A stretch of 64,000 nt of DNA from Marsupella aquatica (lineage: Eukaryota > Plantae > Marchantiophyta). This document shows, piece by piece, positions 16,257 through 54,675 of this stretch (position 1 is its first letter; each line of letters opens with the position of its first letter). Under the pieces are notes generated by a model that was given only the letters and a program-made list of their open reading frames with translations, was not told the DNA's origin and did not search any database. A program made the translations under genes and the position numbers. The stretch lies in contig OZ316899.1 in the NCBI GenBank assembly GCA_973895155.1, forward strand, positions 5,521,241 to 5,585,240, read 5' to 3'.

Positions 16257-16268
16257 TCATGCGCAGGC

Positions 16269-28870: not shown

Positions 28871-29374
28871 CAATGTCATGCCATTATTTGTTTGTAGTGT
28901 GAGTCATGTTATGTAAATTTTAGATGTCAAGAAGGAGTACAAGAATCATGTCCTCTTGGAGATTCATAGTATCATGCATGTGCTTTCAGTTATCTCATCA
29001 TGCAGTCATCAATTATGAGCTCCTGTTTTGTCTGAATTACATTGATCACATTGTAAACTATTCCATTGGAATTCAAATGATCTACTAACATTTTTGAGCA
29101 AGATTGTGATTCTGTTTAATTCTTATTAATGTTTTGTGTAGGATCTCCTTATATGATGCTTTGTTTCATGTGAATGTCATTCATGCTATGTTCATTTCTT
29201 GTATTCAATGTGTTATATTTCTAAAGTTAGAACATTAGGTTTCTATGTATTGTAATGTGGAGTGCTCTCTCTCCTTATGAACTGTCCCTCTGTGTTCATT
29301 AGTCATGGTTACAACTTGCATGTGAACCTTATTAGTTATAAACATGAGTATATAGAGTCCCAAATGGTTCTGTT

Positions 29375-29700
29375 GTGTGACCCGGGCCAGGGTCTCCATT
29401 GGTCTCTCCTGTGACACTAAATGGTCACACGCTAGTCGTTGTTGAATGCGAGCAAGTCATGTATGTGACTTACCATGTGACTCGTCAAAGTCATATTGCA
29501 GTCACGTAGAAACAAGGCTAGACTCCACAATAAAGTCACAATCAGTCACAAATGGGTATCAAGCAAGTCACAAAGCCCAGTATCAATAGTGACTTCCATT
29601 TTTTGGTCTCAACTTTTGCAACTCCAAGGGTTACAGCGTGGGTCAAGTCACGTTGAGTCACAATGAAGTCACATGAGCCAAAATGAGTCACATATTGCGG
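29375..29700. repeat. CACTA-1 subterminal repeats (AGTCAC/GTGAC motifs)
   Basis: More than 10 GTCAC/GTGAC copies in both orientations next to the right TIR. Confidence 0.75.
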
Positions 29701-31360: not shown

Positions 31361-31367
31361 TATAAAA
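31361..31367 (+). promoter_or_regulatory. TATA box of the family-R ORF (copy B equivalent at 58655)
   Basis: gggTATAAAAgggg is conserved in both copies and lies ~105 bp upstream of ATG 31466. Confidence 0.6.
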
Positions 31368-31465
31368 GGGGGCCGATCCTTTGCAGTGCACCAGCTCTCC
31401 AGTCCACGCGCCAGCTTCAATCCCAGCTCTCTCACTTTTCCTTAGTCACCTGCTATCTCCTGTGA

Positions 31466-33846
31466 ATGTTGCACACAATCCTTTCCAGTTCGGACATACG
31501 ATTCTGGACTCAGTTCCTGTCTATCGGAGGATACTTGGCTGACTCATTGAAACACGCCAACCCGCACCGATACAAGATCGAACGCGAATACGAGAGAGCC
31601 ATCCGCCTAGCAGGACAACACCACTATCTCCTTAACTTTGATTACCCATCCCAGAGCGAGCTTTACCGACCTGAAGAAGTATCAGGGTACTTCTTCGACG
31701 GAGGCAAATACATCGGCTTCTGGGAGGCATTGCTTTGGCTTCCGGACGAGGTCTTCAATACTCCGGGCACGATCGACTTGCAGCGGCACCACTTTGACCA
31801 CATCCCCGCTCGGGTCCGGGCTATCATCAATGGCGAGTTCAACACTACCCGGTCGACAGGACCACCTTCACTTGCGTCGGAAAACCTCCACCGGCACCTG
31901 TAAAACTTCATGGCAACTCTACCATCAATGACCAGTGCCGGCCAACCCGTGCTCGTACCCGCACCTACACCTCCTTGACCTCAGCCAAGCCGGTCCCCGC
32001 CACCGGTTCCACCACCTCTCCAAGTACGATCTGTGGTGAATGCGGTAAATATTAGCTCTGAAGACGAGGAGGCTCACCCTCCTCTGAATCGACGGCCACG
32101 GGGTACGAACAACCTAGCACCACTCCAGCAAGCCTGAGGGGATAACACGGTAACGCTAGCGGCCCCGACACCAATACTCACCGCAGTTGCGCTACCACCA
32201 CCTGACCGAGAGGATGGAGAGATGTCCCCTTCTTCTAGTCACCCCGAGAATCAGTCTCGGGGTAGGAAGAGGAAGGAGCCCGTAGCCGTATCAGGGTTGC
32301 CTTTGGCCACGGTTGCGGTAGCCAAGCTGACCATGCATTGCATGGGGGACAATGTTCACAAGAACATCCTCCACCCCAAGCATGCATGCTATCTGAAGAC
32401 CCAAGGGTTTGAGCACCTCGCCTCTCTCCTTGGAACGGAAGCAGGTATTACAGGCAGGATATGATGGAGTTCATTCAGAACTTCGACGAGGCCCGTCAAC
32501 AAACCCGAGCGCACGGGAGAGTGATGTGTCTCGATGAGGCACGTCTGAAGATGATTTTCGGCTTACTCGAGGGGATAAACCGGGTAGAGTCGCGGGCTCC
32601 TGTGGGCAAGGGAGCTAAATACCAGTCATCTAGCTTCCCGACCGAAGGGGTAGTGGACAATGGGTTCTTAATGAGGACGTGCCTCATCCCGGAGGTAGCA
32701 GAATGCCTAGAGTTGCAGCGGTATGCCCTCCACATGATGGAACCCAGAGGAGAAATATCGGCCGCTTAGGTCATCCAGGTGGAGAACTATCGGCCCAAGA
32801 AGTGGGCGTTCTTCTTCGTCAAGAAGTTCCACGAGGAGATGGAGCGGAGAAGGAAGACTTTGTACCTTGGTGGGAGGGCGTACTTCGCTAGCCACATCAA
32901 AATCATCATCAAGTGGTACGCTCGCTTCGACCGCCAGAGCTTCCCACGTCTCAACGAGCCCGAGCTGACCCCGCCAAAATGGGTGTTCCCAGCCCAGGTA
33001 AGGCGACCGCAGCCCGAGGCCCGAAGTCTAGCAGCTGCAAGTCCTGCTACCCCGGCCCCGCAACCCATTGCTGTCGCCCCGCCAGGCATACCCATTGACG
33101 TTATCGCAACCTTAGACGCGATCAATCGAGACAATGCCATCGAAGCCGGGCCGGATGAAGCCGTACCCAAAGCAGATGCCACGGTAGCCGGGGAGATTCC
33201 GCCACCCCCCGTGGTGGTGCAGGAGAACCACCCACCTCCAGTGGAACTAGCCCCTTCGACCGACTTACCTCAAGGGCTGGATGTGTCCACTCCTACTCCC
33301 GCACGGGTTGGAGTCTGCCCGTGCCCGAATCCAGAGGGACACAGTCTAGACCATCCGGAACTCTTTGCGCCAGGCACATTTCTGAACGGGTTGTTGGGAG
33401 ATTTCTCGCAACAGATCTCTCGGGACACCGGGGAATACATGGCCCGGAGGGTGGCCTACTTCTTCAACCAGGAGTAGGTTGCGGCAGTAAGGGCAGGACA
33501 TGCGCAGGCAGAGACCGCGTAGAGAATAGAGCGATATCGGGTTGAGTCTGCCTACCTGAAGGACGAAGTGGCAACCCTGGAGGCTGAACTCCAACAACTA
33601 CGGCCTCAGGTAACGGCCACAGAGGACCAGGTCGCCGAGGCTAGAGCCCAAGTAGCGTTAGCAGTACAGGCCGAGCTCGGAAAGGACGCCGAGATCGCGC
33701 GGCTTCGGACCAAGATTGACGGTTTGCAGGGGCAAACCGTTTGTTGGCAAAAGGATCTGGAGGAAGCCGACTCCAGGTCTCAGCGGGACACAACCGAGAT
33801 TGACACCCTTAAGGCAGAGGTGGCGCGGCTTCAAGGAGAAGTCACC
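31466..33846 (+). pseudogene. Family-R long ORF (continues at ~53567-53780): unique N-domain, Pro-rich linker, plant-mobile-domain-like core, C-terminal coiled coil
   Basis: ORF fragments 31466, 32222, 32461, 32779 and 33568 join into one ~870-aa frame with several stops and one frameshift near 32428. Confidence 0.75.
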
Positions 33847-35117: not shown

Positions 35118-35186
35118 GGCTGCTGCTGCTGTGCTTCAAATCAGCTGCTATGCTTCAAATCTGCTACTGTGCTTCGAATCAGTTGC
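35118..35186. repeat. GCTGCTGTGCTTC(A/G)AATC minisatellite, target site of CACTA-2 (continues at 51733-51770)
   Basis: The repeat register continues across the excised CACTA. Confidence 0.8.
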
Positions 35187-38100
35187 CACTAGTAGAAACC
35201 GGGGCAATTTAGACCATACCTTATAGGACTATGCCCACTAAGTTCTTTTTCCATACTTAAAACAACTCGCACCCATTGCACCGGTTTTGTTGAAGACTAG
35301 AAAAGACTATGAGAGTTTTATGGTTCACTAAAAGACTATGAGAAGTAACCTTGCTACTTTGTGAAGGGTGAATAGTCTAGCACATCATGGGTAATGTTCA
35401 CTCTATGTTGAGGAGGGGTAATTCTCCTTCATCTTTGAGCCGAAAGCACCGACGTCTATCGAGTGCCAAAGAACTGCTGGAGATCGAGCGAATTCACACT
35501 CTCAGATGTGGGTCGTGTCAAATTGTTTCCTCCATTGATGGCAGCCTTCTGTGAGATTGATTTATACTGTGTGGCTATCTGGGAGTTTTGTCGACTCATT
35601 TGACACCGATACTCCCGTGATTTCCTCATACATAGTGCCACTGCCCCCCCGCATTGTGTTCAATCCCTATAGCTTATAGCTGCACCACTCTTGGTGGCCC
35701 TTGCTCATGCCTTGGTTTTTTTTCTTTTTCCCATTACAGTATACACCCCCTTCTTACTAATCAGGTGGATTAATTTAGTACTAGACAATGCTTTGACACT
35801 TTACACTTACACTATGCTGACCTACTGCGCCTTCTAGTGCTTATTCCCTAGTTGTTACTTGTTGCATGGACCACTAGAAGAACGGCTTCGCAATCTTTGC
35901 CTGATCTGATGACCCTGGTTGAGTAACTCTTTGTTATTGCCTCCTTTGGGTGTTGAGGTTTTATGATGCCATTTGGCCTACTGGTTCCCCCATCCGTGGG
36001 GTTCACGCGGAATAAATGTAAAATTTCAAACAAAAAAATAAATCTATAAAGAGGGTGATAGCAAGGGGCATAACTCATTAAATGTCCTTATTTGTGACCA
36101 AAAAGGTTTTGGGTTTAATGAAGTGGGGTTCATGGAGGTTGGACCATGGAGGGATGGTCAAGATATTCTTGGCCATTACTAAATCCATCTATAAAAGGTC
36201 AAGATGCACAAAGGTAGATTTGTACCGGTCCTTTTTCATACATTAGAGCTAGGTCACATTCTTGCACCGGGAATATTGCATTTTAGGACCGGATATAATG
36301 TTGGGCAACCTTAATCCTGATTACGGCGTGCAATAAAATGTCACTACCGACCATGTATGTGCAAATATGACCATTCATTGCCTAAGTTGGCCATGCAGTA
36401 ACACTTTGTAGCTTTGTCCCACTTTGGGTGACACTCAACGGCTCACTCAAACGGTAAGGCTGAGTGGCTTCCCCTAATTCGGTTTCAGGCACTAAACTTC
36501 ACTTTGGGAGTCTCTTTGGAGTTTTCGCCATTGTCATTGAACTTAGAACGTGAGGGGTGGAGTGTTCGGGGTTTTACGTAGGGTTTTCCTTTCAGTGTTG
36601 CCCACTTTTTGCGACCATTGCGGAGTGAACTTCCCGCGCGTTATGTGCTTGTTTATGCTCTCAAGGAGCAGTGTTCAGGCAGTTGCAGTGATCTAACCTT
36701 GCGCTTGCAGTCTACTCATAGACCTGCATTCCTGCTCGATCTCCTTTAGGGACATTTAGTTTTTGGCTGGTAGGGCGAAGAAGGTTGTGGTTGCTGCAAC
36801 GTTCGTGAGGAGCTTGTCGGAGTTTGAGGAGTCGGAGGTTGGGGTTTCTTCAAGGTTTTGGGTGACAATCTCGGTCACAGTTGTGGTATAGACCCTTTTG
36901 CTGCACCCATAACGAGCATCGGGAGGCCGTGAGGCTCATTGGGAGGTCCTTCAGTTGTCAAGCTGCCGTTGAGCTGGTGAAGTTGCATGCGGGTTGCATC
37001 TGTTCTGCGGACACAGTCAATGTGGGAATCCATATTTTCATAGTGCTTGTTCTTGCAAACTGGGAGCCGAGAGTTTGGAGTCGGGAGCTAAGAAGGGTAT
37101 TGTTAGGCTTCAATTACTCTGTGGTTTTCTCCAGCTCCATGGTACAGTTTCAATGTTAATGCTTTGTCCTTGTGCTGGTCTAGGTAGCGCGAGCTTCTAC
37201 CTATTGCGCCCTCTTGCTGTAAGCGTATTGAGCTGCCAACTGAGTGATTCATACCTGTAGCTGCTTACGCGTGATCAAGAGATTGAACAAATGCCTAGTG
37301 CTGTCCAGCAGGAGAAAACTCTTTTTGGTCACGATCGGGCGTTGGAATATAACTAAGTGCGGCAGAGCAACACGGGGAGCTGTAGAGTTGCAGACAAGAC
37401 GCAACTACAGAGGAGGCATTGGGAAGGACACAACGGTGCGGTGAAGGTACAAGGACCGTGGACCCTAACTTGTTTGCTGCCTTGGGAGGATCCGGAGAGC
37501 CCGAGGCGACATGCTTCATTGAGCCTGAGCTAGCTGAATCCAATCCAGGAGTTGTTGCGCTAAGGTGAGACTTTGAGTTTAGGGTTGCTTCAGTGTCCGA
37601 GTAGGTTTTCTCTTTGCGTCGGCAGCTAGAAGGTAAGCTCGGGGGCTTTACAAAGGGTTAGTGTTGCGGACTTTCCCTCCTGGACGTTGTGTGTCTTCAT
37701 TTGCAACTTGTTTGTGGACCTGTGATCCTGAGACTGTCAAAATTGTTGTGGCCGCACTGACAACTTGATGACGCGTTTTGTGGATGCATCGTTAGTAATC
37801 GCGAGTACAGCTCTCCAACAATTGCACTTACCATTTTTGACCACCTTGCATGATGTCCATCCGTGGGCTGGACCCCAAGAAGTAGATTTCGGTAGATTTC
37901 GGTAGATTTTGTCTCTGCCCCCGGTCCTCGTTTTGTGCAATGTCCGCCTGGCACTTGGTTCTTGATCCCTACATTATCGTCTGCCGCTCGGCTGCTTGCG
38001 GAAGGGATCAAACAGATTGGAGGTGCTTGGTCTTTTCATTTTGAGTGTCAGAGTTTAGGAGGACAGCTTGCACCATCGCCGACAAGAATGACCTGCTTGC

Positions 38101-39580
38101 AGAACAAGAGGGACGAGCGTGAGCTGCTTGCAAAATAGGAGATTGACCGCGAGCACGAGCTGCTTGAAAAATAGGAGACTGAGGGCAACCTGCTTCTTTG
38201 TTGCTACTCTGGTTGCGCTGCTACATTGGTTGTTGATCTTCACCCACCCACTTGCCTACTCAATTGACAGAGTACAGCTTTGTCTCTGCGTCTGTTATTG
38301 CTGTCTTTGTCCCTCCCCTTGAAATTGTGGGCCTTAAAAGGTCAGTAAGTTGGCTTATGTAGTTTTTATGTCCCTCCGCTATGTCAATGCGTGTTTCATT
38401 GCATCAGGGCATCAGTCGCTGTTTGCCTATAACCGGACTGTTCATTCTCTGTCCACTCATTTGATGTAATTCTTCCCATTGCCGCCCAATGCTATGGCGC
38501 CCATGCTACAATTTGTGGTTTTTGTCTAAGCACAAATCCTCTCTGTGCCTGGTCTCTGTGTCCCGTCATTGGGATTGATTGTGTAGACGTTTCCTCTTCT
38601 CCCAGTCCTTGTCATCCACCAGCCAAAGCACATTGGATTGTTTTCAAAGGAGGGCTGTGTAGTTTGGAGGGTTTGATCTATGCAGCGGATTTGAGCAGAT
38701 TGGCGGTTGTTAGTTTCTTCTTGTAAAACCTGTCTGTCTTTTCTGCTTTTGGCCATGCTCCTTCACTTCTTGCTGCAAGCTCAATGTGCTTCAGCTATGG
38801 CAATATTCACTTACCCTATCCCAACGGCACTACCGTGAGCTGTAGGACAGCCAACAGAAGCAGATTGTATCGATTGCATGTAAGTCAGGGTATTTTATGT
38901 ATTGCGGAACAACTGTCCAAGTTTGCTGCAATGGCCGGTCTTGCGCAGCTGAATGAGCCAATTTCATTTTCCCTGTGCACTTCTATTTCTCAAAGAATTC
39001 CCTGGTCATGCTCATTTCCCCCAGAGTTAGAAAACAAAGAAGAAGAGCTAACTAATTGTAATTCCAATCCATATCCTGATCGGTCAAGGATTGTTCACTA
39101 CATTGGCCTTGTCATTGGCCGAGGTCACCAAATTTTGCTTGGTTTCATTCCTGTGGAGCACTGCTGTGATGGATTTGTCGTAGCATTCTGCAAACTCTCA
39201 CGGTTTGCTTATGGCCATTATTTGCAATTTGCTGCTACTAATATGTCTTCTTCTGAGCAGCATACACCAGAAGTAAGCAATAGTGGAGGTTTAACTGCAC
39301 ATCAACACATCTAGTGAACTACCTCTCTGCTGCTCACTGGAGGGTGAGACTTTCACTCTTTCTGGATATTGTAGTTTGTAAGCAAGTTGATTAGGAGTGT
39401 TTCATGCTATGTTTACACTGTGACCCCTAGCTGGAACCAATGGAATGACACAGTGAGTGGGAACTGATAATTTAAGGTTGGTTGCTGTTGGTGAGGCAAG
39501 TACAGCTCCTGCTCACCTTGCTGATCGAAGGTGCTTATCAGAGGACGTGAACACACGACATCTCCACAAAAGCAACACTT

Positions 39581-40030
39581 ATGGTGAGGACCCGCAACGC
39601 TGAACATGTGCGGCTTGCACGCAAGGCAGAGATGTTGCGCCTTGAGTATGTCAGACTTGGGATCCTTCCAGCCCAGTCTGCATGGTACTTTGAGTACCCA
39701 GTTGTTGCCAGGAACAACTACAGCCGGCCTGTACCTGCTTCTCCACCCTTCCCAACATCCTTGGTATTTCTGTCTCTCATACATGACCCGCCACAAATTA
39801 GGGCCCAAGGGTGTGTGCACAGTTGCCAATATGACTGTCCTGCCTGTAGGGCTTCTGGCCTAGAGTTGGATGACCGTTCTCTTGGATGTCGGTTTTTTCA
39901 CAGAGCACAATGTATCATCTGGAACCACTCGCCATCCTGCAGTGTGCCTGGCGATGTCACTTGTCCTGCCCTCCCAGACCCCACCACCGGTCACTTTGGT
40001 GTCTACACATGTTTGGATCACACGCGCTAG
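39581..40030 (+). CDS. Cargo ORF-A: PHD-like Cys/His protein
   Basis: Intact 149 aa; paralogue of 15049-15498. Confidence 0.75.
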   Translation: MVRTRNAEHVRLARKAEMLRLEYVRLGILPAQSAWYFEYPVVARNNYSRPVPASPPFPTSLVFLSLIHDPPQIRAQGCVHSCQYDCPACRASGLELDDRSLGCRFFHRAQCIIWNHSPSCSVPGDVTCPALPDPTTGHFGVYTCLDHTR

Positions 40031-40699
40031 AGGACCACTTGTCACACCGCATGCACAAACCAGAGACCATTGACCTATAACTTAACACTTAGACTTGAAC
40101 AGAGAGGATATTTACTTAAGATTTTGAATTATGACCAATTTTGGGTCCAGGGTTTAGGGTCAACAGTACATAACTTATCCTATTATGGCTGCACTAAGTA
40201 CAATATCCTAATTTAAGAGGCTAGCAAGCTCACTTAAAAGTCTCCTTTCAAAGACTGGAATTAATGGGCCATGTGATAACCTGGAAAAAGTGATTTCTGC
40301 CTAACTTATTTGTCTCATTCACTATCATAGCCTATTTAGGATGTATAAATTACAACCCTGATCACAGTGCTTGATACCAATCCTGTTCAAAAAATGCCTG
40401 TTTTACATGTCACGACTGTTATATGTGATTCAAATGCATTAAATCTTGTTGCAGATCTCCTTTGGTGAATCATAGCCACAAAATTGAGGTGTAGATGGAG
40501 CTATTGTACGAGGGGATCAGTTTTTAGTGTGGGCTCAACAAACCAAAAAGTATGTCTACTCTGCACATGTGTGTGAACATTTCATTGCAGTAGCAATTGC
40601 CACTCTAGTCTATATGCTACACTGTACTTTTTGTACACTGCACTAAATTGTATTGTCCGTGCACTCTGCTAAATTGTACTATCTGTCTCATGCGTAGGC

Positions 40700-41380
40700 A
40701 TGGCACGCCCTAAAATCCGAGCCAAGAAGCGGGGGACAGAGGTGAGCAACACAGGTGTAGTTGGGCCAGATGGTAGTAACTTCTCCGCAAGTCAGATTTT
40801 CCAGAAGGCAGCTCATTGTTGTGCCATTTGTGACGATGGTGGTGGCTTAGCCATATGTGAGGGCCCTTGCATGAGGCATTTCCACCTCAACCCGGAGTCT
40901 GACCTTGCTGCAGAAAACAACTGTCCAGGGGTGGGCCTCCCGTCAGCACACCAGGGAGGCTGGATGTGCACTGATTGTTTGGAGAAGCAGGCTAAGTGTG
41001 CACAGTGTGGGAAGTTGGGGTCTTATGAGGGCTCTGTTGATGCTCCACCACTTGTTAGGAAATGCCCTGACAGATATTGTGTGAGGTTCTTTTGTTTTTC
41101 ATGTTTGCCCGATCTTGCCACAGCTTGCCCACTTCATAAGTGCAAGGCATGTGGTCAGCACGATGAAGATTTCTGGGTGGACATAGTCCACTGTGTTAGG
41201 TGTCCCACCATGTGGCACTTTCATTGTTTGAAGGAGCGTCAAGCAGAAGGCTATGCTTGTGACAGACACATCTATGATCACTCTGCACATGGTGTTGATC
41301 GATGGATCTTCTATTGTCATCGCCATGCCATAGATCCTACTTTGCACACTCCCATGAGAGATCACATTTCTTGGCTTTGA
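40700..41380 (+). CDS. Cargo ORF-B: stand-alone EDM2/NSD-type composite PHD finger protein (226 aa) with basic N-terminal NLS-like segment
   Basis: CAICDDGGGLAICEGPCMRHFH...C...WMCTDC; CAQCGKLGS...CPLHKCKAC...CVRCPTMWHFHCL...IFYCHRHAIDPTLHTPMRDHI. Motif order and tail match the EDM2 PHD region as I recall it. Confidence 0.85.
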   Translation: MARPKIRAKKRGTEVSNTGVVGPDGSNFSASQIFQKAAHCCAICDDGGGLAICEGPCMRHFHLNPESDLAAENNCPGVGLPSAHQGGWMCTDCLEKQAKCAQCGKLGSYEGSVDAPPLVRKCPDRYCVRFFCFSCLPDLATACPLHKCKACGQHDEDFWVDIVHCVRCPTMWHFHCLKERQAEGYACDRHIYDHSAHGVDRWIFYCHRHAIDPTLHTPMRDHISWL

Positions 41381-41977
41381 ACCTGAATAATATACATGCA
41401 TAGTGCACCTGATGTGGATACCTTGGAGATTGCAGACATTCCAATTTTGAGAAGAGGACCTCTGTAGGAGAGGATGCTTAGGCAACAAGTACCCTAAGTT
41501 CATTACTTGTTCCTGGGTACATGCCTTCAAAAACTGCCCTTAAGCCTTCTAGGAACTTTTTTAACTCTGCAATCATTTTGATCACGACTTACATGACACT
41601 GCTTAAATTAAATCAGGACTTCTCATTATGAGCATATAAGTTACAAGGCTATTTAATTTGCGAGAATTCCCTTAAAGTGTACCAACATTTTGTATTCTCA
41701 TTGAATGTCTGCCCATTTACAACATCTGTATGTGGCATCACAAAACAATTGCACTTGTCACCTTCAATATTGTGAAGGCACATATTCAAACTATGAGGTG
41801 CATGCTTGCAGGTGTCTAGTACGTTTGTCCCAATATTTCTCCCGTTTGGAATCGGAGCAGAGACTCACCAGACGACTGGACTGGACCAAGTTATAAACGC
41901 AGCATTTTAAGGGCCCTCCGATTATCAGGTGAACGCATTATCTTCCGGTCTGCAGTGATTAGGTGGCCCGTGTGTAC

Positions 41978-42826
41978 ATGGCCTCTAGAAAACGTACAAA
42001 GGTTGACCACCCGCCTCTGTTGGCTGGAATCAAAGCCATTTTGATTCCTGGCCACTATGGGTTCACCCAAGTGAGTTGGCCAATCGTACAAAAACGATTC
42101 TCAGAGTTCCATGGGACTGAAGTCAAGGACATCACTCCACAGACTACACATGTTGTTGCGGGGACATGGCTGGATGTGATGAACAAGTGGTCATGGTCCT
42201 TCATTGATTCTGCCATTACCAACCAAGGTCTAAAAGTAGTTGAAGTCTCTTGGCTGACCGATTCTGTTAAACATAGGTGTGTACAGAGTACTGAGCAATA
42301 TGAGTTGTGGGAGAGTGAGGAGGCCACTGCAGAGGCTTTGGCTGAAAAGGAAGCCTATGAAGCACCGGCAGAGAAACCCAACTTTGCTTCTGTCCAATAT
42401 GGACCTGTTGTCAACATAGGACACCATCCTATGCGTGCAGATGCTATATTGAATGAGCATGGCAAGGAGAGAAATACCATTATGAAGGGGTTCAGTGTGG
42501 TATTTGCAGAAGAAGGAATTGGGGAGACTAAGTGCAGACTGTACAAGTCTATAGTTGTTGAGCTAGGTGGGACAGTGGAGGAGAGTCTAACAGAAACCTC
42601 CACTCATGTTGTAGGTCTGTCATACATGAAAATATGCAGAAAATTCTTTAAGACAACAGTGCGTGATTTTGTCATGAACAACAATCTTTGGGTGCTTTCC
42701 CCTGATTGGCTTCTAGAATCAGCAGCTAGAGGGAAGCGACAGAATGCTTGGGACTTTGATATTTTTGAGGCCTGGCCCTCCAAGATTCAGCGGAGATGTA
42801 TGCTTAGCAAAGGTGGGAGAGAGTGA
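41978..42826 (+). CDS. Cargo ORF-C: two BRCT domains resembling the Pol X/Pol lambda type
   Basis: BRCT1 ...TPQTTHVVA...VVEVSWLTDSV; BRCT2 GFSVVFAEEGIGETKCRLYKSIVVELGGTVEESLTETSTHVV...LSPDWLLESAARGKR. N-terminal RKRTK NLS-like. Confidence 0.85.
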   Translation: MASRKRTKVDHPPLLAGIKAILIPGHYGFTQVSWPIVQKRFSEFHGTEVKDITPQTTHVVAGTWLDVMNKWSWSFIDSAITNQGLKVVEVSWLTDSVKHRCVQSTEQYELWESEEATAEALAEKEAYEAPAEKPNFASVQYGPVVNIGHHPMRADAILNEHGKERNTIMKGFSVVFAEEGIGETKCRLYKSIVVELGGTVEESLTETSTHVVGLSYMKICRKFFKTTVRDFVMNNNLWVLSPDWLLESAARGKRQNAWDFDIFEAWPSKIQRRCMLSKGGRE

Positions 42827-43002
42827 GGAGTAGGAGTCCCTCATATTTTTGTATAAAACACAATTTTGTAATAAATGTGATCCTTGAACTAACTCATCTT
42901 GTCATGGTTGGTCGTAGTTGAAGTGATTGTTGTTTCCTGCTGCGTGGGGTGTGACTGTGAATCTACTTGCTGGGCTCTGTTTGGCTGAAGACTTTGGTGG
43001 GT

Positions 43003-43536
43003 ATGCTGCCTCTTCCAGACCGTCAGGCCCTATGTAGGGTCCTCCTACGGGTTGCATCGTGCATGGCTACTGCTTGGGCTTACTTGTGTGGATTGGTAAC
43101 CAGACAGAGTGTAGCTCCATCCGAGATAATGCCTGCAGACCTTGGATGTGTTGTGAATGCTGTGGTGAATGAGGATGCACAGTCGGAAGAGGACATTTAC
43201 TTTTCAGCAGATGAGTTAGACAAGCACGATGCTGTAGGTGGTTCCTTGTTGCCTGATTTGGCAGATGATATAGTTCTTACACATGTCTGGCCGAGGGTTC
43301 TTGTGGTGTCTGGCGCACAAGATATCTGCAAATATAGACTAATTAGTACCCAGTGGAGGGACTTGGTAGCAACATGTGCACCATGGAGGGCACTGCTGCC
43401 ATTGCTTGTAGGCACGGATCGAAGACCACCATGGCATGAGCAGGGTTTAGACCTTGATGACTTAATGTACATGCCTGAGTACCTCAGGGCTGAGTGGCAT
43501 CGACAACAGGATTGGTATCCGTATTTGATGTGGTAG
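43003..43536 (+). CDS. Cargo ORF-D: F-box-motif protein
   Basis: LLPDLADDIVLTHVWPRVL...ICKYRLISTQWRDLV. The C-terminal ~110 aa are nearly identical to copy 1. Confidence 0.7.
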   Translation: MLPLPDRQALCRVLLRVASCMATAWAYLCGLVTRQSVAPSEIMPADLGCVVNAVVNEDAQSEEDIYFSADELDKHDAVGGSLLPDLADDIVLTHVWPRVLVVSGAQDICKYRLISTQWRDLVATCAPWRALLPLLVGTDRRPPWHEQGLDLDDLMYMPEYLRAEWHRQQDWYPYLMW

Positions 43537-43862
43537 TAAGATGAGGACATCTCACACCGGTCTCGCACCTGGCACCTGTGTCTATGACTATACATGATTG
43601 GACTCTGATATGGTCATGGATGTACGTGCAGAGGCAGTACATGTGAGGACAGCGGAGGAGTTGACACCCTCAAACATTTAGGAATTTTGTCTCATTCACT
43701 TGAGAATAGGTACATGACTCAGGCACCTATATTTTTTGTTTTTTGGTTTTTTTGGAACGTTACGTATTTTGGCAAGTACAGTCGGGGGTGAAATCCTTAA
43801 CAGGAAGTGTATTTTTCACTTGCATAATAAAATGACAGGGTGCTGAGTGCGTGTGTATAGTG

Positions 43863-46800
43863 ATGGCTCCAAGGTTGCCTCTTCACAACCCATTTAGGAT
43901 TAGGCATCATGATTCTAAATTGTGGATGCGTGAACAAGCCCGGGCCGCCCAAGGTAGGAGTAGGAGGATGAGATGCCCATGCACACAGTGCCAAGGATTC
44001 AAGTCGTTGAGTTTGAACACTGTGCACCTTCACCTGCTGCGGCATGAAAGGCACCCTCGGTGGAGGGTTTGGAATGTACCAGCAGAAGAAGACTCCTCTG
44101 ATGAAGAGTGGAGAGCTGACTTTGTGGATTCTAATACAGCTAGGCGTAGAGACTACGTAGAGCAGGACATAGACTGTGCAGAGGATGGTCCTGGGGTCCA
44201 ACATGAGAACGTGGATGACCAAGATGGAGATGCAGAGGCAATCACTGAGGACGGTGGGATGGATGTCCCAAGAATGGTTCAAGAGATTTTTGAAGACCTT
44301 GATGCTTTTTACGACACAGTGGAATCAGAAGAGGACAATGAACCGCAGCCACACATTGGCGACGGCCAAGCTCAACCTGACTTTGACATTGGGGAAGGTG
44401 CAGCAGAGAGGGAGTGGGTGTTTGGGGGCCCAAAACACATCAAAGAAGCTTGCATTCCTATCTACGAGGGGTCGAACTGCTCCAAGCTGGGTTTTGTCGT
44501 GTTGTTGTTGAACATCTGTGGCAATCACAATGTTCCCAATATATTTGTGACAAAGTTGTTGACCTTCCTGCGCCGAAATGTGTTACCAGATGGTAATTCA
44601 ATTCCAAAAAATATGTACGAGGCTAGGAAATTGATGTCTAACCTTGGGCTGAACTATGTGTCTATTGACGCATGCCCTGATGGGTGTGTTCTCTTTCGCA
44701 AAGAGCATGCAGATAAATTGACATGCCCTCATTGTGGTAAGCACAGGTACAAGAATGTAGGGAACTATACACACCCTGCCAAGGTTCTTCGTCATTTTCC
44801 TCTCATTCCTAGACTACAACGTCTGTTTAGATGCCCTGCCATTTCCAAGCTGATGACATGGACTCCTGATAACAAGAGCAGTGATGGCCTGCAGCGTCAC
44901 ATTGGAGATTCCAACCATTGGAAATTTGTTGATGAGAGGTGGCCACAGTTTGCTGCAGAGAAGCGGAACTTTCGATTTGGTCTATCACTGGATGGAGTAA
45001 ACCCATTTGGAGACAAAAACAACCGTTATTCATGTTGGCCGGTTACGCTGCTAAATTACAACCTTCCCCCATGGATGACTACAAAGAGGTTTTTTGTCAT
45101 GATGGTGCTGTTAATCCCTGGACCAGCTTCTGTGACCGAGCAATTCATAGATATCATGTTGGCTCCAGCAGTGGAAGAGTGGAAGACTTTGTGGATAGAA
45201 GGGGTGTTAACCCATGATGTTCTGAAGGGGCTTCTTCGACCCAGCCCCTTTAGACTGCATGCAATTTGTTTGCTGGATATAGCAGATTACCCAGGCCATG
45301 GCATCATATCTGGACGAGTGACAAAGGGCTATGTGGGGTGCACACCATGTGGGAAAAATGTGACAAGTGAGTGGTTGCATGCCCTGCACAGTATGAAATT
45401 TCAGGGGCATAGAAGGTATCTGCCTGTTGATCATCCTTACAGGCACACACGGTCTCAAATTGCACACTTCAACAACAAAACAGAGCTTCGTGGCCCACCA
45501 TAGAGGGTCACCAGAGAGCAAGTCCTGAGGTGGGCAGCCAGGAAGGCTGATTGGGACAAGAGAAGTGCCACTGATCGAGAACCTGAGGATCCAGTGGTGA
45601 AACACGGTGTGAAAAGACAGACCTTGATGGACTTGGAGTTGGAGTACTGGAGGGTAATGTACTTAGCCTCCAGCCCCTGTATGATTGCAATTTTAGATTG
45701 GAGCAATGGTGGATTGATGTTGGTTACAATCCTCCTCTGTGGTTAATTAGTGTTTCTATTGTTGAATTCTTTGCTTTGTGGAGTGCAGGAATTCGAGCCC
45801 AGCAAACACAATGTGGACGTCATGCACATTGAGAAAAATATTTGTGAGAGCTTGCTGAAGTTCTTGTCGGGTGAGAAAGATACAGGAGCAGTTCGAGCTG
45901 ATATGCAACAGAAGGGGATTCGCCCTCACCTTTGGTTGAAGCCCCATGCAAGCAATCCCAATGTACTTCTCAAGTTCCAAGCTCCCTATGTGTGCACACA
46001 GGATGAATGGAAGACATTCTTGTATAGATTGAGCTGTCTGAAAGTGCCCTCTGGCTATGCTGGTGCCTTCAAGAAGCATATTACAAAGAATAAACTTGGC
46101 AGTATGAAAACACATGACTACCATGTGTTGATGCAGCACATTCTGCCCCTATGCCTCAGAGGTCTCATGCAGAAACCAGTCCGTAATGTCATTCTTCGAC
46201 TGTGCAATGTATTTCGCCATATATGTGTGAAAGTGTGGGATCCCCAAGGATTGGAGCAGTTGAAGCAGGATGCTGCTTATGTCCTCTGTGACTTGGAGAT
46301 ATACTTCCCCCCTGCTTTCTTTGATGTTATGACTCATCTCCTAATCCATGTGGTAGAAGAGCTAGGGCAGTATGGGCCAGTCAGTACCAGATGGATGTAC
46401 CCTATGGAGCGATACATGAAGTTGTTGAAAGGTCATGTGAGAACATACTACAGGCCAGAGGCTTCCATGGCATTGGGGTACATTAAGGATGAGACGTTGG
46501 GATTCCTAACAGAGTACATGGCTGGGTCTGGTGAAGCTATGACAAGAGTTTGGAAATCTGGTGAAGATGATGGAGTGAGTGGCGAGGTTGTTGAAGGTGT
46601 GGGACGTGCTGTTCAGCTGCCTGTTGCGATTCGAGACAAGGCTCATTCATATGTGCTGGCAAACACAGAGCCTATGCAACCATGGTGGAGGTGAGTGATT
46701 GAATTGACTTGCCTTTGTTGTGATGCTTCTTGTCTGTTCCAAGGGTGATCTTAGGTTGTCATGTGTTGTTTAGACCTAACTATGCCTGTACCTCATAATG

Positions 46801-47563
46801 CAGGGAATATGATATGCAAAAAGCTGCACACTCTGGGCAGCAGGATCCCTTCCCACAGTTTGAGCAGTGGATTCGGGTGACAATTCGAGAGCATAGTAGA
46901 CATCACCCAGATATGGAGAAGGATTTGTATCTTCTATCTGTGCCACCACGATTGTCTATTCTGACCTACAAACGGATGAGAGCTTATGGAAATCATTATC
47001 GAGTGAGGGATGAGCAGGGTGACCATTGTGTATCATTTGATTGTGGTTTGATTTCTGTGTTTGAGCAGAGAACCTCTGAAGAACAGAGGGGGTGGATGAA
47101 GATGGGTTACGTGGGGGAGTTGACCGACATTTGGGTGTTGAATTATGGTAACACAAGTGTCCCAGTGATATTGATGAAGGGATCATGGGTGAAATCAGAG
47201 TGGCAGAGACCAAGGGCCACCATGAAGCGTGATCATGATGGGTTCTTGTTGGCCAATTTTAGGTCCAGAGTACCAGAATGGTCTAAGCCTTTTGTTTTCC
47301 CTAGCCAAGTTGAACAGGCTTTCTTTGCAGATGTGGAGGAGTCACATGGCTGGAGGGTGGTATGCCATAGCCAAGCACGGAACAGGCGGATGGATGGAAG
47401 TAAAGTAGAGTTCAGTTTGGATGACCATGCTGCATTCGAGCATCCTAGTCATGAGACTGTACTTCCAACTCGGGCAGGGACTGACTACATCCCCTTAACA
47501 TTGAGAGAGACATATGATGAACCTGGGCAAATGGAATATGATGAGGTTGATGATTTGCAATAG
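43863..47563 (+). pseudogene. tnpD: TnpD transposase, exons 43863-45653, 45789-46690 and 46804-47563; one premature stop
   Basis: Same Tnp2 motifs as copy 1. In-frame TAG at 45501-03, probably from CAG. Confidence 0.95.
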
Positions 47564-47740
47564 GCAACAGCTGGCGATTGGCAAGTATGAGGTTGAGGAT
47601 GACTACCTGCACAGAGTCACATAACGGGAATTGCTGCCTGGAATGATGTTTAGGATAGTTGGATATGCATGAAATTGATTGATACTTTGAATTTAGTGTG
47701 CTAATTCTCCCTGTTTGGTTGTGGGTGCTATGCAGAAGCT

Positions 47741-50700
47741 ATGGGGGAAGAGGGTGATGACATGGAGACAGACATGGGGCTTGGAGAGTGGGGTGAAGAG
47801 GAAAGATTGGATATGGATGGAGACCCAGATGCAGGGGGCTCACAGAAAAATGCACCTGTGCAAGATGCACAGGGCCCTCATCAAGTCCCAGGTAGGTGGG
47901 CAGCTAGAGAGAAATCACATAATCCATACCCTAGAAGGAGCCAGAGTTATTGGCAAGGGACGCCTGATAATTATGATGATGACTATGATGGAGCAGAAGA
48001 TGGATGGGATGAATATGAACACCCAGAGCGTGGTAGAGACGGGTACAGAGGGCAATGGAAAGGTGAGGAGGATGATTGGACAAGTAAGTGCCTTGTGCTA
48101 GTGATTTTGTGATGATAGTAGAGATTTAGCTCAATATGCACTTATCTGATGTGTAGCTAGGGCAAAGAGTTTATCTTACAGGTCCATGAGTGTGGCATGT
48201 ACCTGTTGGTATGCAGACTCTGATTGGGACAATCACGAAAACAACAAAGGCCATCCACGTTCAGATAGGAGGCAATCATTCACAGGCGGGAGAAACGCCC
48301 CTAATTCATCAAGACAAAGCAATAGGACAGGTGGTCCAGAACCATCTATGCGCCAAGGGAGAGGTAACTTGGTCATTGCAGAATTGCTCTGAAGTCCACT
48401 GTATATTTGGCAGCGGGATTTATGATTCATACTTACCTAATGTAAGTGACTGTAAATGGATCCTGTAAATGTGCAGGGACTCCAGGGAGGTTTGGACAAT
48501 GCAATCCAGGCCGTGGGGGGAGATCAGGCCGTGGAGGGACCCCAGGCCGTGGGGGGACACCAGGCCGTGGAGGGACACCTAGTAGCGCTTCAGGGAGTAC
48601 CAAGGCAGGAGACAGTAACAAATTTGGTAAAGTAGAAGTGAATTCCGAAGGTTGGATAACTCCCACATGTGATGGTAAGAACCGTTGGCATTCTGACCTA
48701 AGAGGAGAAGTATTGCGTTGGTTAGATTTGAGCATTACAGAGTTTAGGAGTCAGAACAAAGCTGATTGGGCTGCTATCTGCAAGGACATTCTTGAACGGT
48801 GGGAGTATGTTGGTAATGATGGTAAGGGCCCAGTTGAAGATTGCATATCAGATTATGCAATGAGGATTTTGAAACAAGAGAGGCATAGGTTAAAAAGGAT
48901 GTGGATAGACAATGGTTCTAACAGGAGAATGCCACCACCCCCATCATTGGAACTGGATCAATGGACACGGTTAATCAAAGGGTTCATGTCGGAGGCTGGA
49001 CAGAGCAAGAGTGAACTGATGTCAAATGCTCGAGGCAAAGTGAAACACCTTTCACAGGCTGGGAGAGGAAGTTATGCTCCAGTGAAAGAACAATTGGTAA
49101 GGCAGTGACATGCCTGATAGTAAGCCTCAAACTTATCATCTTGCTACCATTATTATATTTTCATTGACAATCAACACTTGGTTTCATTCATATGTATGTT
49201 GATGTGGACTGCAGAAGAAATTGACAGGTGAAGAACCATCAGCACAAGAAGTGAGAGAGGAGTTCATGAAACAAAGGAGTGAGGTGACAAGTGTAACTTC
49301 CAAACAGGTGATTATGTTGTAATTCTGTATGTTCTGTGACTATTTGGCCTTGAGCATCAGAAAGAAATGTAGTAGGAAGTAAGCAACCAGTTCTTGGGGA
49401 CAGTTATCTGAGATATGTAAGCTGTGTTATGACAGGGAACTGTTACAACTCTCACAGAGATGTGTGAACGGTTGAAGTCATTAGAGTGTGGACTCCCTCG
49501 AGTGGAAAGTAAATTGGCTGATCGTTTGGATATTGTGGAGGCATCTGTAGCGAACCTTCTTGCATCAGTGGAATCTAATTTCAAGCTTGTGATTGAAAAA
49601 TTGGGTGGTTCCCAACCAAACAATGAGGGCAACATTGTACAAAGTGTGCCCTTGTTAACAAAAAAGGGAATTGGCAAATCTGACACAGGTATGGAAATGA
49701 CACCGGCCCATTGTTCATTGGGAATGTTCAAATGTTAGAAGTAAGTTTTCATGAATTGAGTGAATGGTTTGAATGCAGGAAGAGTGGAGGCAGAGAAGGA
49801 CCCTGTAATCAGTAAGCAGAAGGGCAAGAAGGTTGCTGAGACAGGTAACCTGCTATGATCCAATACATTACATTTGAAAAGTGCATGGAGTTTTGTGAAG
49901 CTTAAGCCGGTTGGAGGTAATCTTTTCTGTAAGAACTGGTTGGATGAATTGGGATCTGAAGTGACATCATGATTGATGTATCAGGTGATTCAAAGAGCAA
50001 TAATGAAGAAGATGTGCCCAGTGCCTCAGTGACCATAGCCAAGGAGGTATCAGGTAAGCTGATGCTTTAAATTCCTCTATATGAATGTTGAGCAACAATT
50101 CAGTGGTTAATAGATTCAACCTGAATATTGTGGTGTGTTTATTGATCAACAGAAGCAGACATGGAGCATATGGCAATGGCAAAGAAGGGGAAGAAGGCTG
50201 TTCATAATGGTAAGGAGATAGTGACAACTTTGTGGTTGGTGACATGTACATTTAGCACATGTGATGAGTGATTGACTTATGTTGGACATGACACTGAATT
50301 GTAGTTGATGCAGAGTTGACAGACTCTCAACCAAGTGGGAGTAGGGTGAAGCGACGTCGAAACTTGGGAGCAACATTGGATGCAAGTAAGATTGTAGATG
50401 CTTCAATTGAAGCAAGTACAATGTTGGCAGATACTGAGATGATGTCGCAGGGAAATCCTGCTACACAATCAGAAGTGTCAAATATGGATGCAGATTCTTT
50501 GAAGAAGAGTGTAGCCAATTCTCGATCACCAGCACAAAACACTCGTGCCAAAGTCATGACTCGCAACCAAGGTATGAATAATGTCATGTATAAGCCACCC
50601 AGGAAAGCCAAGAAAAACAGCCAGGGTAAGGTGGAGGTGATAGCCACAGCAGAGCCAGTCCATAATCTTCTATCATGGGAGGATGACTCGCAGGTATGTG

Positions 50701-50909
50701 TGGGTACAGGCATTTTGTGACCGGATCATGCAAAATTCCATGGCAAAGTGGTCCCGGATGACCATGTAGTAGTGTTGTTGACTACAGTGATTGTATCTGA
50801 TTGTAATTTGCCATTTCCGAATAGAGACGATGATCCACCTCAGGAAATAATTGCAGATGCAGTAGGATCTCTTGTGCTCTGGCCATCAGAGTGTGTTAGT
50901 CTGCAGTGA
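47741..50909 (+). pseudogene. Multi-exon TnpA-like gene
   Basis: Exons include 47741-48083, 48217-48363, 48477-49096 and ~50314-50909. KNRWHSDLRGEVLRWLD core and DDPPQEIIADAVGSLVLWP tail; in-frame TGA at 50718. Confidence 0.8.
48506..48580 (+). repeat. 18-bp coding tandem repeat x4 encoding (PGRGGT)n
   Basis: caggccgtgg(g/a)gggac repeated four times. Confidence 0.9.
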
Positions 50910-53900
50910 CTGAATGCAAGTGTAGATAGCATCATGTGAATTGTGTCACATTTTGACATTGCCTTGGAAAGATCCAAGAAATATCTGTACCAATTTTTCC
51001 ATTTGGTAAAGAGGATGAAGGAGACGTTGTGTGTGACATTGATATTTCTGAATTCTGTATGTATGAAACAAGTGATTGATGTCAAACTATGGCTCTATGG
51101 TGATTGTCTATGATACTTGAATCTATTTTATCATTTCAGTATTAGTGTGTATGGTATAGAGGAATACTTTGTGACCTTCTTTGTAGTCTATGAAGTTTGA
51201 ATCTGTGAATTCATATTAGTGTACATGGTATAGAAGATGGCTTTCTGAAACTATGTATTCTAATGTTAACATGATGAATGGTGAACTTATAGAGTGAGTT
51301 CATTCCAAGTACACAATAAAACATGAATGCAATATGTTATTTGTGCACAAGAGTGGGTTCATTCCAAGTAGTATAGTGGGTTCATCACTCATATCCAGTT
51401 GACATAAAAGACTTATACATACCCCACAAAGTATATTTAAAGACTACCCTCCATAACCTTTTTAGTCGTTCCCAACGACTCATCATCGCAGCCCATAAAA
51501 GACTAAAACCGACTCACCAAAGCTACCCACACAAAGACTAAAATAGACTGAAAATCCAGTCTATTAAACGACTTATAAACCAGTTCTATAAAGGACTCAG
51601 TTGATTATAGTAACAAAACATACGACTCGCAGTCCTATAAAGGACTAGAGTCCTTCCCAGTCGTTTCCAAGTCCTATACGGTACTGAATAGTCGTTTAAT
51701 GGGGTCTAAATACCCCCCGGTTTCTACTAGTGTGCTATGCTTCGAATCTGCTGCTGTGCTGTTGTGCTGCAAGCTGCGAATTGGTGGGCTATGGCTGTTG
51801 CAAAATTCTGCTGCGATTTTGAATCACTTGCAAGGCTGGATGGCTATGGAGGTGGACTGAGAAGGGTGTTGTAGACCTGGTTGAGCTATCAATTGACCTG
51901 CTGTCATTCGATCCAATAGAGAATGCTGTCGTTTCAGATTGAATTCAAGAGAGAGGAAAATGCTGCAAAAATTGGTGTCCTTATCAATCTTCTTCATAAG
52001 AAATGTGAGTATAATGAGAGTACTCTCCCCTCATGACACGTGGAATCCCCATAAGGGGCGTGTAAGGTTCAAGTGTAATCGGGTCGCCGCTTACACCCGC
52101 TTTACACCAAAAACAGGCCTTGGGAGAATGGGCATAACTTTGGCTAGGGGTATCCGTTGGGGTCCAAATTTTTTTGTGCTGAGTTAGGTGAAGGTGGAAA
52201 CCCAGAAAAATAATCACTCAAATATATTTTTAGCGGAGGCCACGAGGGGGTCCCCATAGCTTGCAAACAGGAGTCGGCATGGGGGAAGTAAGACCAGGTT
52301 TTTAGGCCGACACTTCTTGCACCCGTGTCACCCAAGTTAGGATACATGGAGAAGAGAGTACCTCAGGGTAAAGGTGCAAGGCCGTTAGGGTAAGGAAAGT
52401 AAGTTGATAGGTCGGGGTAGTAAGTAAGGACTAGTAAATAAGGAGCCAACTTTGACATGACACAACTTGAGACTCACTCACTCTTTTTGCGAGCTTTCAA
52501 GTGGGTTGGGAAGATGGTGAGGAGGACCATAAGTGAGAGTAGGTTTGGAGGTCAAAGCATGCAACTCATGTGTGGCATATTCCAGGGCTTGGAAGGAGTC
52601 AAGCAATAGGTTGTAGAGTGAACTACAAACTATAGAGTTGGACTTTGTGTGTTAGGAGGACTTGGGGGAGGAGTAGTTGGACCCCAGGTCAAGCTTGGTG
52701 TGGTGTGGAAAGAGAATAGTATATAAGGAGATAGTTTTCCTTTGTTAGGGACCGGGAGTCTCATCTCTTAAGTGGAATCTCTACCTTGCCAAGGTAGGGC
52801 TAAGCTTGAGAAGGGAGAGGTGGTCCATGCTTAGTGTGGAGAATGTGTAGTGAACTTTTGTTGTAAAGGTGATGCAATAAAAAGAGACTTGCCAATCTTC
52901 ATTGTGACCATTAAGTGTGAGTGCATTTGAAGTATATGAGAGCAAGAGAAGAGTCCATGCTATGATGTAATCTTGGTCTAAGCTTGAAGGGGATGTGCTA
53001 GTACAAAACCAAGGCCAAGAGGCAAGGTTAAGGTAGAGCACTACTTTGAGACTTAGAGAGGATTATAGCTTGAGGGTGGAAAGTATTTTGCTTGGTGTGT
53101 GGTGTTAACAAGAAGTAAGAACAAGAGGAAGAGTCCTTAGATAGAGGAGCCTTCTCTAGAGCTCAAAGGGGATGTGTGGACCCAAACCAAGGCCAGGGGG
53201 GCAAGATTGAGGGGTAACACTACTTTGAGGGTCTTGAGGAGACTTAAGCTTGAAGAGGAAAATACTTTGGTTCTTGGGTGTTTGTGTGAGACTCTTCTCT
53301 AAGGTGACAGCTTGGAGCGGAGATCCCCCTTGCTGATCCTTGGAGTAGAGGAGAGGGGAAGGGTGTGAGTACAAAAGTAGTCAAGGGGACTACCTCTCTA
53401 GAAGTGGAGAGTTGAAACTACTTATGTATGGAGTGATTAGTCATTGTAGGCACATTTCAGAAGTTTTGTCAATCCTTTGTGACCGTGGTATGATATGGAG
53501 CAGGTATTAGGTAGTCTTTTGGGGAGAAAAGCCGCTTAAGTTCCTTGACAAGTGTTTGACACCACAAAACAGGCCTAGTTGGTGGACAAGCTGACGAGCG
53601 ACACCCAGCAACTGGAGGAGGCATGCCAGGAGGCCGTGGAAGAGGCGAACGCGGCAAAGCGGGAAAACAAATCTCTGATGGACCAGGTCTAGCTACTCAA
53701 GCAGGACGCCGACAGGCTCAGAAGGCAGCGGGATAGCCGCTCCCACTCAGGCAGCTCTGGCAAGCGTGCCAGGCATTAGCGACGGAGTAGGATTAGAGTA
53801 GAGTTAGGAATAGCTAAATTAGGCTATAGGGACAAGCACCTGCCCTAGTTAAAGCAGCACTGCCATGCTGTACAACCTGCGTAGATTAGGATCTTCTAAT

Positions 53901-54675
53901 AAGACAAGCTATTTTCTGGCCTGACAGCCAGCTTAGTTAGGACCTTAGTTAGCAAATCTTTGGGTGCGAGGGCACTCCGTTCCTCGGCCCTTAGTATTTA
54001 GTGCACCCCTTGGTAGAGGCAGGGGGGTTTTTAGTCTCAGTGTTGGACATCCGCGGTATGTGCGGGGAGTCCCGACCTCTGGGAGTGAAAGAGTACCGAG
54101 AGGAGGGTGTGGGACTAAGCTCGCTGGGCAAGTGCGGAGCCGGGCTCCGTTGTAGTGTACACCCTTGGCCTTGGACCTGTTCATTCCAGAGCTTTCGGGT
54201 CAACTAAGTGTGCGCATATGTCTCCTATGTAGTAAAATTCTTCCCCATTATTTCCTTCGTGTAAATCAAGATTGTATGCTTGCATGTATGTGTATGTATG
54301 AATCTTGTGTATAGGTGCCAACGCTTGGCCGAATGCACTCCCAAGTCGGGCACAGGGTGCGACTTGCGGGTAGTGGTTGCGAGCCCGGGTTGAGTACCCA
54401 TATCATCGAATCCGGATCGAAGGCGGACAACATGAAGGCTTAGAAGCCCGTAAGCCGGGGTTGATCCTGTTGTCGACTGAGGTACGTTCCGGCGGCGGAA
54501 CACAAACCATACCTAGGAGGTGTCCGTATATGACCATAGGCGCACTTAGCGCTAGTTTACGTGAGTTAGGTGCATTCCGTGCATCCCTCCCTGCCTGAAT
54601 CCTCATTTTGACGAAGGATGTGCCTGTCTAAGCCAAAGCCCGGGTTAAGGCCTAGGCTGACGACATGACAATATA

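Follow-up and report, generated by a model that had tools for sequence, protein, structure and literature searches.

Putative helper genes ahead of the transposase gene in two CACTA transposons of Marsupella aquatica

In the CACTA transposon En/Spm, TnpA and TnpD are spliced from a common leader exon, and MULE/CACTA elements bearing a ULP1 protease exist as well; to our knowledge, few transposon accessory proteins (VANC, MURB, and TnpA) are understood. VANC of VANDAL elements and MURB of MuDR are accessory proteins specific to their lineages, maintained by selection and encoded next to the transposase (PMC5735166, PMC10398659, and PMC12973397), and fungal DNA transposons carry genes for TET/JBP dioxygenases (PMC12730594). 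Here we describe two CACTA elements, E1 and E2, found in a stretch of 64,000 nucleotides from Marsupella aquatica (Marchantiophyta; assembly GCA_973895155.1, contig OZ316899.1, positions 5,521,241 to 5,585,240 of the forward strand), referred to below as the window. In both elements, four intronless open reading frames (ORFs) on the + strand, in the order A>B>C>D, precede the transposase gene TnpD, and judging from their sequences these ORFs would seem to be helper genes that belong to the transposon itself.

E1 and E2 resemble En/Spm in their CACTA termini, 3-bp target-site duplications (TSDs), and subterminal repeats, in a transposase of the Transposase_21/DUF4218/DUF4216 type with a downstream gene that has a weak Transposase_24 match, and in having all genes co-oriented behind a long leader. 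They are unlike En/Spm in that four extra genes, encoding a Cys/His-rich, a triple-PHD, a twin-BRCT, and an F-box-like protein, lie between leader and TnpD; we know of none of these four in classical En/Spm. Like VANC and MURB, the products of this cassette are encoded by selected accessory genes beside the transposase, but they belong to another superfamily, show no sequence similarity to those proteins, and consist of other domains; moreover, a function has been shown for VANC, whereas the functions of the cassette proteins are predictions. The likeness to the TET/JBP and ULP1 carriers lies in a DNA transposon lineage that keeps host-derived cargo related to chromatin or modification, whereas the cargo itself is different and here comprises several genes in a fixed order. 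Among the papers searched, we found none linking CACTA elements with BRCT plus PHD domains, and none on BRCT accessory genes of DNA transposons. Taken as a whole, the data are best explained by two related CACTA families that own accessory genes ahead of TnpD, a reading we regard as quite probable.

The four accessory genes

A search of the window for CACT[AG] termini whose inverted ends match and which are flanked by a 3-bp duplication yielded two clean elements, and reading of the ends fixed the exact bounds of both. E1 measures 19,187 bp (10542-29728, + strand), and E2, a complete transposon, 16,546 bp (35187-51732, + strand). An earlier note on this DNA had proposed two TSD-bounded CACTA elements that carry the same four co-oriented ORFs, in the same order, ahead of TnpD, with all four ORFs intact in E2. 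All of this was seen again, TnpD being a Transposase_21/DUF4218/DUF4216 gene, while the span given there for the element, 39581-50909, turned out to cover only the inner part of E2. Selection within the window was assessed on the E1-E2 pair by the Nei-Gojobori ratio of nonsynonymous to synonymous substitutions (dN/dS), with out-of-frame controls and a binomial test.

ORF B of E2 (40700-41380, + strand) encodes 226 aa with a basic N-terminus and a conserved C-terminal HISWL. As a single sequence it matches the Pfam families PHD-1st_NSD, PHD_NSD, and PHDvar_NSD at 25.8, 21.1, and 17.2 bits, just under their cut-offs. The family profile matches PHD1-PHD3 of NSD2 (residues 647-838) at E 1.4e-11, NSD3 is matched too, and the first finger matches PHD1 of AIRE. 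All 7 sequences compared have the same Cys/His ligands, and the last finger ends with Cys..His; the C4HC2H variant is typical of EDM2/NSD1 (PMC3776765). The "EDM2-PHD" of the earlier note is thus borne out as an NSD/EDM2-type triple PHD by profile and Pfam, the resemblance being set by NSD2/NSD3 and by the published EDM2 signature. ORF B shares with EDM2 and NSD1-3 the same Pfam families and the Cys..His of the last finger, but it is a stand-alone protein of about 220 aa, transposon encoded, and without a methyltransferase or ELP domain. Five homologues were found outside the window (38-82% identity, 217-245 aa); six B homologues in this length range are free of stops and have in common the start, MARPK, and the end, HISWL. 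The E1 copy (16269-16949, + strand) is a pseudogene that aligns gap-free with E2 over 226 codons. For this pair the dN/dS is 0.27 (out-of-frame controls 0.69-1.41, p 9e-7), and between E2 and the outside homologue L001 it is 0.23.

ORF C of E2 encodes 282 aa from an ATG at 41978 (41978-42826, + strand; the mechanically called ORF starts with a GTG at 41963) and likewise has a basic N-terminus. PF00533 matches it at 52.4 bits, above the cut-off, in two stretches, and both halves match BRCT chains in the PDB; the tandem BRCT predicted earlier is confirmed as two domains by Pfam and PDB profile. The ORF C profile finds BRCT matches at about 1e-6 (Rtt107, REV1, Rad4/TopBP1, BRCA1, and Pol lambda), with no clear parent. 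The protein thus has the two BRCT domains of tandem-BRCT scaffolds (the BRCA1 C-terminus, Rtt107, TopBP1/Rad4, REV1, and the Pol lambda BRCT), but it is small, stands alone, carries a signature of its own (THV.A..W....WSW) and, in a weak alignment, apparently does not keep the phosphoserine pocket of BRCA1. An exhaustive HMMER search of 1.84 billion representatives returned 17 proteins, one of 931 aa (E 1e-3) and the others of 62-313 aa; the full-length matches are stand-alone twin-BRCT proteins of 264-313 aa, and no close host parent of ORF C was found among these representatives. The E1 copy (17527-18345, + strand) is a pseudogene with 3 in-frame stops and 58% amino acid identity to E2. The dN/dS is 0.58 for E1-E2 (controls 0.80-1.40, p 0.003) and 0.38 for E2 versus the outside contig L005.

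ORF D is intact in both elements, with 177 aa in E2 (43003-43536, + strand) and 172 aa in E1 (18620-19138, + strand). The E2 protein starts with a variable N-terminal hydrophobic helix, followed by an F-box-like motif and a C-terminal block, PLLVGTD..LDDLMYMPEYL; what is conserved in the family reads LLxDLPDDLV..VWPRVL..AQDIC.YRLIS.QWR.LV..W.AL.PLLVGTD..LDDLMYMPEYL. Three outside homologues are 51-55% identical. An F-box match was obtained for 3/5 family members (best E 0.0011), the best PDB match, a weak one, is the F-box of FBXL5 (E 0.16), and the Atlas search returned F-box clusters at 0.86-0.91. The dN/dS is 0.37 for E1-E2 (controls 0.74-0.98, p 9e-5) and 0.34-0.50 against the outside homologues. 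Between D and TnpD, a part of the non-coding spacer, 43565-43653, is itself conserved, with 73% identity over 106 nt to the region downstream of D in L005 and 87% E1-E2 identity at its 5' end; by its sequence it may be a promoter or leader element of TnpD.

ORF A encodes 149 aa in E2 (39581-40030, + strand), with the N-terminus MVRTR and an invariant Cys/His set, and its E1 counterpart (15049-15498, + strand) is intact, 149 aa long, and 89% identical. Two outside homologues of 150 and 200 aa (54-56% identity) keep the MVRTR start, and the alignment contains nine invariant Cys/His. With length, start, and Cys/His ligands kept at 55% identity, the sequences indicate that ORF A is conserved as a protein. 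No match to it was found in Pfam, PDB-profile, or Atlas searches, and the name "PHD-like" given to it earlier finds no support in them. AlphaFold models of ORF A and ORF D had a mean pLDDT of 44, too poor for a fold search. The equal lengths that had been claimed for A and B in the two copies are real for A, whereas ORF B of E1 is broken by 2 in-frame stops. The start of ORF A (39581-39592 in E2 and 15049-15060 in E1), ATG followed by GTGAGG, is also a good match to a 5' splice site and overlaps the MVRTR codons, which may be a coincidence or a dual signal.

In deeper pairs with outside contigs, the proportion of differing synonymous sites (pS) is about 0.8 versus 0.3-0.5 for nonsynonymous sites (pN), and no stop codons were found in six B and four C sequences. 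These data indicate, at the level of sequence, that purifying selection acts on B, C, and D and that all three code for proteins. Since their dN/dS lies below the controls and the gene order recurs elsewhere, the cassette does not look like randomly decaying captured fragments, in agreement with the earlier note. Across copies, B, C, and D range from 0.23 to 0.58 rather than lying near 1, the outcome that had been set beforehand as refuting, and parts of the cassette recur in contigs from other samples rather than in these two copies only.

Distribution in relatives and mosaic divergence

Outside the window, B (54% identical) precedes a BRCT ORF (25%, E 4e-10) in contig L002, C (54%) precedes a full-length D (172 aa, 1728-2243) in L005, and a further contig has a D homologue followed by a 463-aa cut gene. 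The 13.4-kb metagenome contig L007 contains, in the same order as E1 and E2, B (37%), C (28%), TnpD (44-56%), a TnpA-like block (40%), and the tail block (48%); A and D were not detected in it, and its gap between C and TnpD holds no ORF. In L009 and L010, which come from another project, C adjoins TnpD (41% identical). A and D were found in closer relatives only. Judged by these sequences, the triple-PHD gene B and the twin-BRCT gene C look like an old core of a CACTA lineage, standing beside a TnpD only 41-56% identical, and the alignments place the accessory genes of this lineage between a long non-coding 5' region and TnpD. The cassette was called fixed in the earlier note, which is not the case, as the deep relative L007 has PHD and BRCT only. 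We also noticed that the contigs L009, L010, and L011, which stem from three runs of a single project, have their first base in common, 624 nt upstream of one and the same BRCT gene; such a shared start may reflect either the boundary of a repeat or the end of a transcript.

The transposases of E1 and E2 are strongly diverged, as had been stated, with 58-69% amino acid identity in TnpD and saturated synonymous sites (dS > 2.6 or undefined). The cassette is far less so. The E1-E2 divergence K is 0.06 in ORF A and 0.14 in the A-B spacer; within ORF B it is 0.08 in the 5' half and 0.16 in the 3' half, and the B-C, C-D, and D-TnpD spacers give 0.38, 0.27, and 0.33, respectively. The corresponding dS values are 0.08 for A, 0.29 for B, 0.54 for C, and 0.44 for D. 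It had been argued that the same cassette beside diverged transposases implies long retention, and within the window this argument fails (K of 0.06-0.38 versus a saturated TnpD); long retention of the PHD and BRCT genes is indicated by L007 and L009 instead of by the E1-E2 comparison. These divergences indicate that the cassette and its spacers have a far more recent common ancestor than the transposase, the terminal inverted repeats (TIRs), and the subterminal repeats. Because cassette and spacers are much less diverged than TnpD, we infer that a module was exchanged between co-resident CACTA families, and the simplest reading of the sequences would be that the 5' module moved between families by recombination or gene conversion, possibly repeatedly.

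Transposase genes, element ends, and surroundings

TnpD of E2 (43851-47563, + strand) comprises three ORF blocks (43851-45503 on to about 45653, 45747-46694, and 46799-47563) and has short GT..AG introns, whereas the four cassette ORFs are intronless. It matches PF02992 (Transposase_21) at 194 bits, PF13960 (DUF4218) at 96 bits, and PF13952 (DUF4216) at 23 bits, the last below its cut-off. E1 TnpD lies at 19485-23209 (+ strand). Both genes contain nonsense codons, which had been overlooked in the earlier note. E2 has an in-frame TAG at 45501-45503 where E1 has GCA, and E1 has a TAG at 21647-21649 and a further stop at 23015-23017 where E2 reads through. Thus, neither E1 nor E2 is autonomous.

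Downstream of TnpD, the E2 TnpA-like exon (48446-49108, + strand), which begins with GRGGTP repeats (RGG box), has a weak C-terminal Transposase_24 match (E 0.014, below cut-off) and is 40% identical to E1 25011-25508 and to L007. The TnpA-like exon of E1 (24936-25532, + strand) shows the same weak C-terminal match (E 0.0026, below cut-off). A conserved 3' coding block of E2 (50721-50906, + strand) is 50% identical to E1 28697-28858 and 48% to L007, in which the called gene at this place carries DUF8039. E2 also has an acidic ORF (47741-48112) that contains several motifs of the GW/WG type and is located between TnpD and the TnpA-like block.

E2 is flanked by the TSD TGC (35184-35186 and 51733-51735). 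Its 5' TIR consists of 18 perfect bases, CACTAGTAGAAACCGGGG (35187-35204, + strand), followed by AAGACT/AGGACT-type subterminal motifs, and its 3' TIR (51715-51732, - strand) matches the 5' TIR at 18/18 positions; subterminal TATAAAGGACT/CATAAAAGACT repeats occupy 51403-51685. E1 has the TSD CCT (10539-10541 and 29729-29731), a TIR of 11/11 perfect bases, CACTAGAAGAA, and GTGACT-type subterminal motifs. The ends of both elements start with CACTAG. The different TIRs of the earlier note are therefore better described as related variants (CACTAG-AAGAAAC versus CACTAGTAGAAAC), while the subterminal motifs do differ. From terminus to first conserved coding block the distance is about 4.5 kb in E1 and about 4.4 kb in E2, and from the last conserved coding block to the 3' terminus it is about 0.87 kb and 0.83 kb, respectively. 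CACTACAA-type termini at 9878/33933 were considered as element ends and rejected, since they have no TSD and match at only 14/20 positions.

Comparison of the window with itself revealed homologous stretches at 14886-23041 and 39400-47398. Nucleotide similarity between E1 and E2 was looked for in the immediate flanks and in the 5' regions from TIR to leader block (about 4.2 kb each), and none was found in either. The differing subterminal motifs, together with the dissimilar flanks and 5' regions, led us to conclude that E1 and E2 are two insertions of related but distinct CACTA families. In the 4.2-4.5 kb 5' of ORF A, no ORF matches a known family or is similar between E1 and E2, and Rfam and tRNA scans of the whole window gave no match. 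The E1 5' region contains, at 11559-12138, repeats not present in E2, some in tandem and some dispersed, with unit lengths of about 107 nt and 15-30 nt (GCCTGGAGCTCATTT-type).

Outside both elements, a 62-nt unit rich in GACGATAGAACGG is present in three tandem copies at 1268-1453. A second repeat family (71-85% identity) has a full copy of about 4 kb downstream of E2 (58289-62244), a 5' part downstream of E1 (30993-33835), and a 3' part at 53567-54670; its ORFs at 59362-61060 and 32779-33477 belong to no Pfam family, and a TTGTAGTG motif lies near the 3' end.

Possible functions and competing explanations

Basic N-terminal stretches resembling nuclear localization signals are present in ORF B (MARPKIRAKKRG) and ORF C (MASRKRTKV), from which we infer that both are nuclear proteins. 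PHD fingers of the NSD/EDM2/AIRE type tether to histone H3 tails, and B would do the same. C would be a BRCT scaffold towards host double-strand-break repair or towards phospho-proteins at the excision or insertion site, and D, present in one sub-lineage, would join a host protein to the SCF ubiquitin ligase; together, the proteins would raise the success of the element in chromatin. How they might do so can be suggested only tentatively. The cassette could aid target choice or gap/break repair, which we think possible but on the unlikely side, and a role in counteracting silencing is a somewhat doubtful proposition; the remaining probability, close to half, goes to functions of another kind.

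Several observations weigh against reading the cassette as a selected set of helper genes with these functions. E1 and E2 are both dead copies, and the cassette of E1 decays like the rest of that element. No signal of selection on ORF A is seen when E1 and E2 are compared (dN/dS 0.67, out-of-frame controls 0.52-0.79, p 0.24), a comparison that is uninformative because it contains only 26 differences; in this pair, the selection that the earlier note had ascribed to the cassette is seen for B, C, and D and not for A. The F-box of ORF D scores 13 bits versus a Pfam cut-off of 20.5, which leaves an F-box-like motif of what had been called an F-box. When ORF C is aligned with BRCA1, weakly (E 0.12), the Gly is kept, and Tyr and Ser stand at S1655 and K1702, respectively. 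Since, in this weak alignment, BRCT1 lacks canonical residues of the phosphoserine pocket, classical phosphopeptide binding by ORF C is uncertain. Finally, several of the outside contigs derive from one sequencing project.

We then weighed other explanations of the same data. The four ORFs could be alternative coding exons that belong to a single transcription unit, are driven from the 5' end of the element, and are joined by splicing to a shared leader exon. A block conserved between E1 and E2 (39330-39368 in E2, + strand) that ends AGGGTGAGACTTTC..TCTTTCTGGAT is probably, from its sequence, the 5' splice donor of a non-coding leader exon, and the occurrence of such a donor-like block 5' of ORF A in both elements suggests a spliced leader as in En/Spm. 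The position of this GT donor-like block, which precedes ORF A by about 240 bp in E1 as well as in E2, would suit a single unit, as would the co-orientation of all ORFs with TnpD and the 4.2-4.5 kb 5' of ORF A that lack any ORF of a known family or similarity between E1 and E2. However, every ORF has its own conserved ATG and stop, which argues for separate protein products in any case, and we hold the single unit to be possible, with the odds against it.

The cassette has also been proposed, in the earlier note, to be an anti-silencing toolkit, in which the PHD protein would read repressive marks on the element while the F-box and BRCT proteins would remove or divert host silencing factors; by analogy, its function would resemble that of VANC in VANDAL or the TnpA-mediated demethylation of Spm. 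The reader domain of the EDM2/NSD type, with its C4HC2H signature (PMC3776765), is consistent with this proposal, and so is the effect of EDM2 on transposon silencing (PMC3632883); in addition, the cassette genes are element-borne and selected. Nevertheless, they show no homology to VANC or to any known anti-silencing protein, the F-box of D is sub-threshold, and the absence of A and D from L007 indicates that the "kit" is not a unit. Both the toolkit and its analogy with VANC or TnpA therefore strike us as rather doubtful. A related version, in which A-D form a portable host-manipulation module that CACTA families hand on by recombination, and in which the PHD and BRCT proteins would recruit the F-box adaptor to chromatin and thereby cause degradation or diversion of a host silencing or repair factor at the element, is in our view decidedly unlikely; if true, it would be the transposon counterpart of viral F-box suppressors.

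Alternatively, the cassette could consist of Pack-CACTA style transduplicated host fragments that drift neutrally and came to be shared through recent copying between elements. The youth of the cassette relative to TnpD, the pseudogenes at B and C of E1, and the dN/dS of ORF A in the E1-E2 pair are in line with such cargo. These points are set against full-length ORFs whose starts and stops are kept at 37-55% amino acid identity despite saturated synonymous sites, a gene order beside TnpD that is kept in distant relatives, and the failure to find a close host parent for C, and neutral drift is accordingly very improbable. A tandem segmental duplication with E1 and E2 as its halves, to which the similar repeat spacing (about 24.4 kb and 27.3 kb) and the second repeat family downstream of both copies might point, was rejected as next to impossible, because TSDs, TIR variants, and subterminal motifs differ, the immediate flanks and the 5' regions (4.2-4.5 kb, TIR to leader block) are dissimilar, and the synonymous sites of TnpD are saturated.

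Two related CACTA families with accessory genes of their own thus remain the favored explanation. A histone-reader module and a twin-BRCT protein have persisted through deep divergence in a CACTA lineage, a sub-lineage of which has gained two further proteins, one F-box-like and one rich in Cys/His. The mosaic ages suggest that accessory modules move between transposon families, which bears on how such toolkits spread. If the targets of these proteins lie in host chromatin, repair, or proteolysis, the cassette would open a direct way to study how cut-and-paste elements cope with silencing or with break repair.

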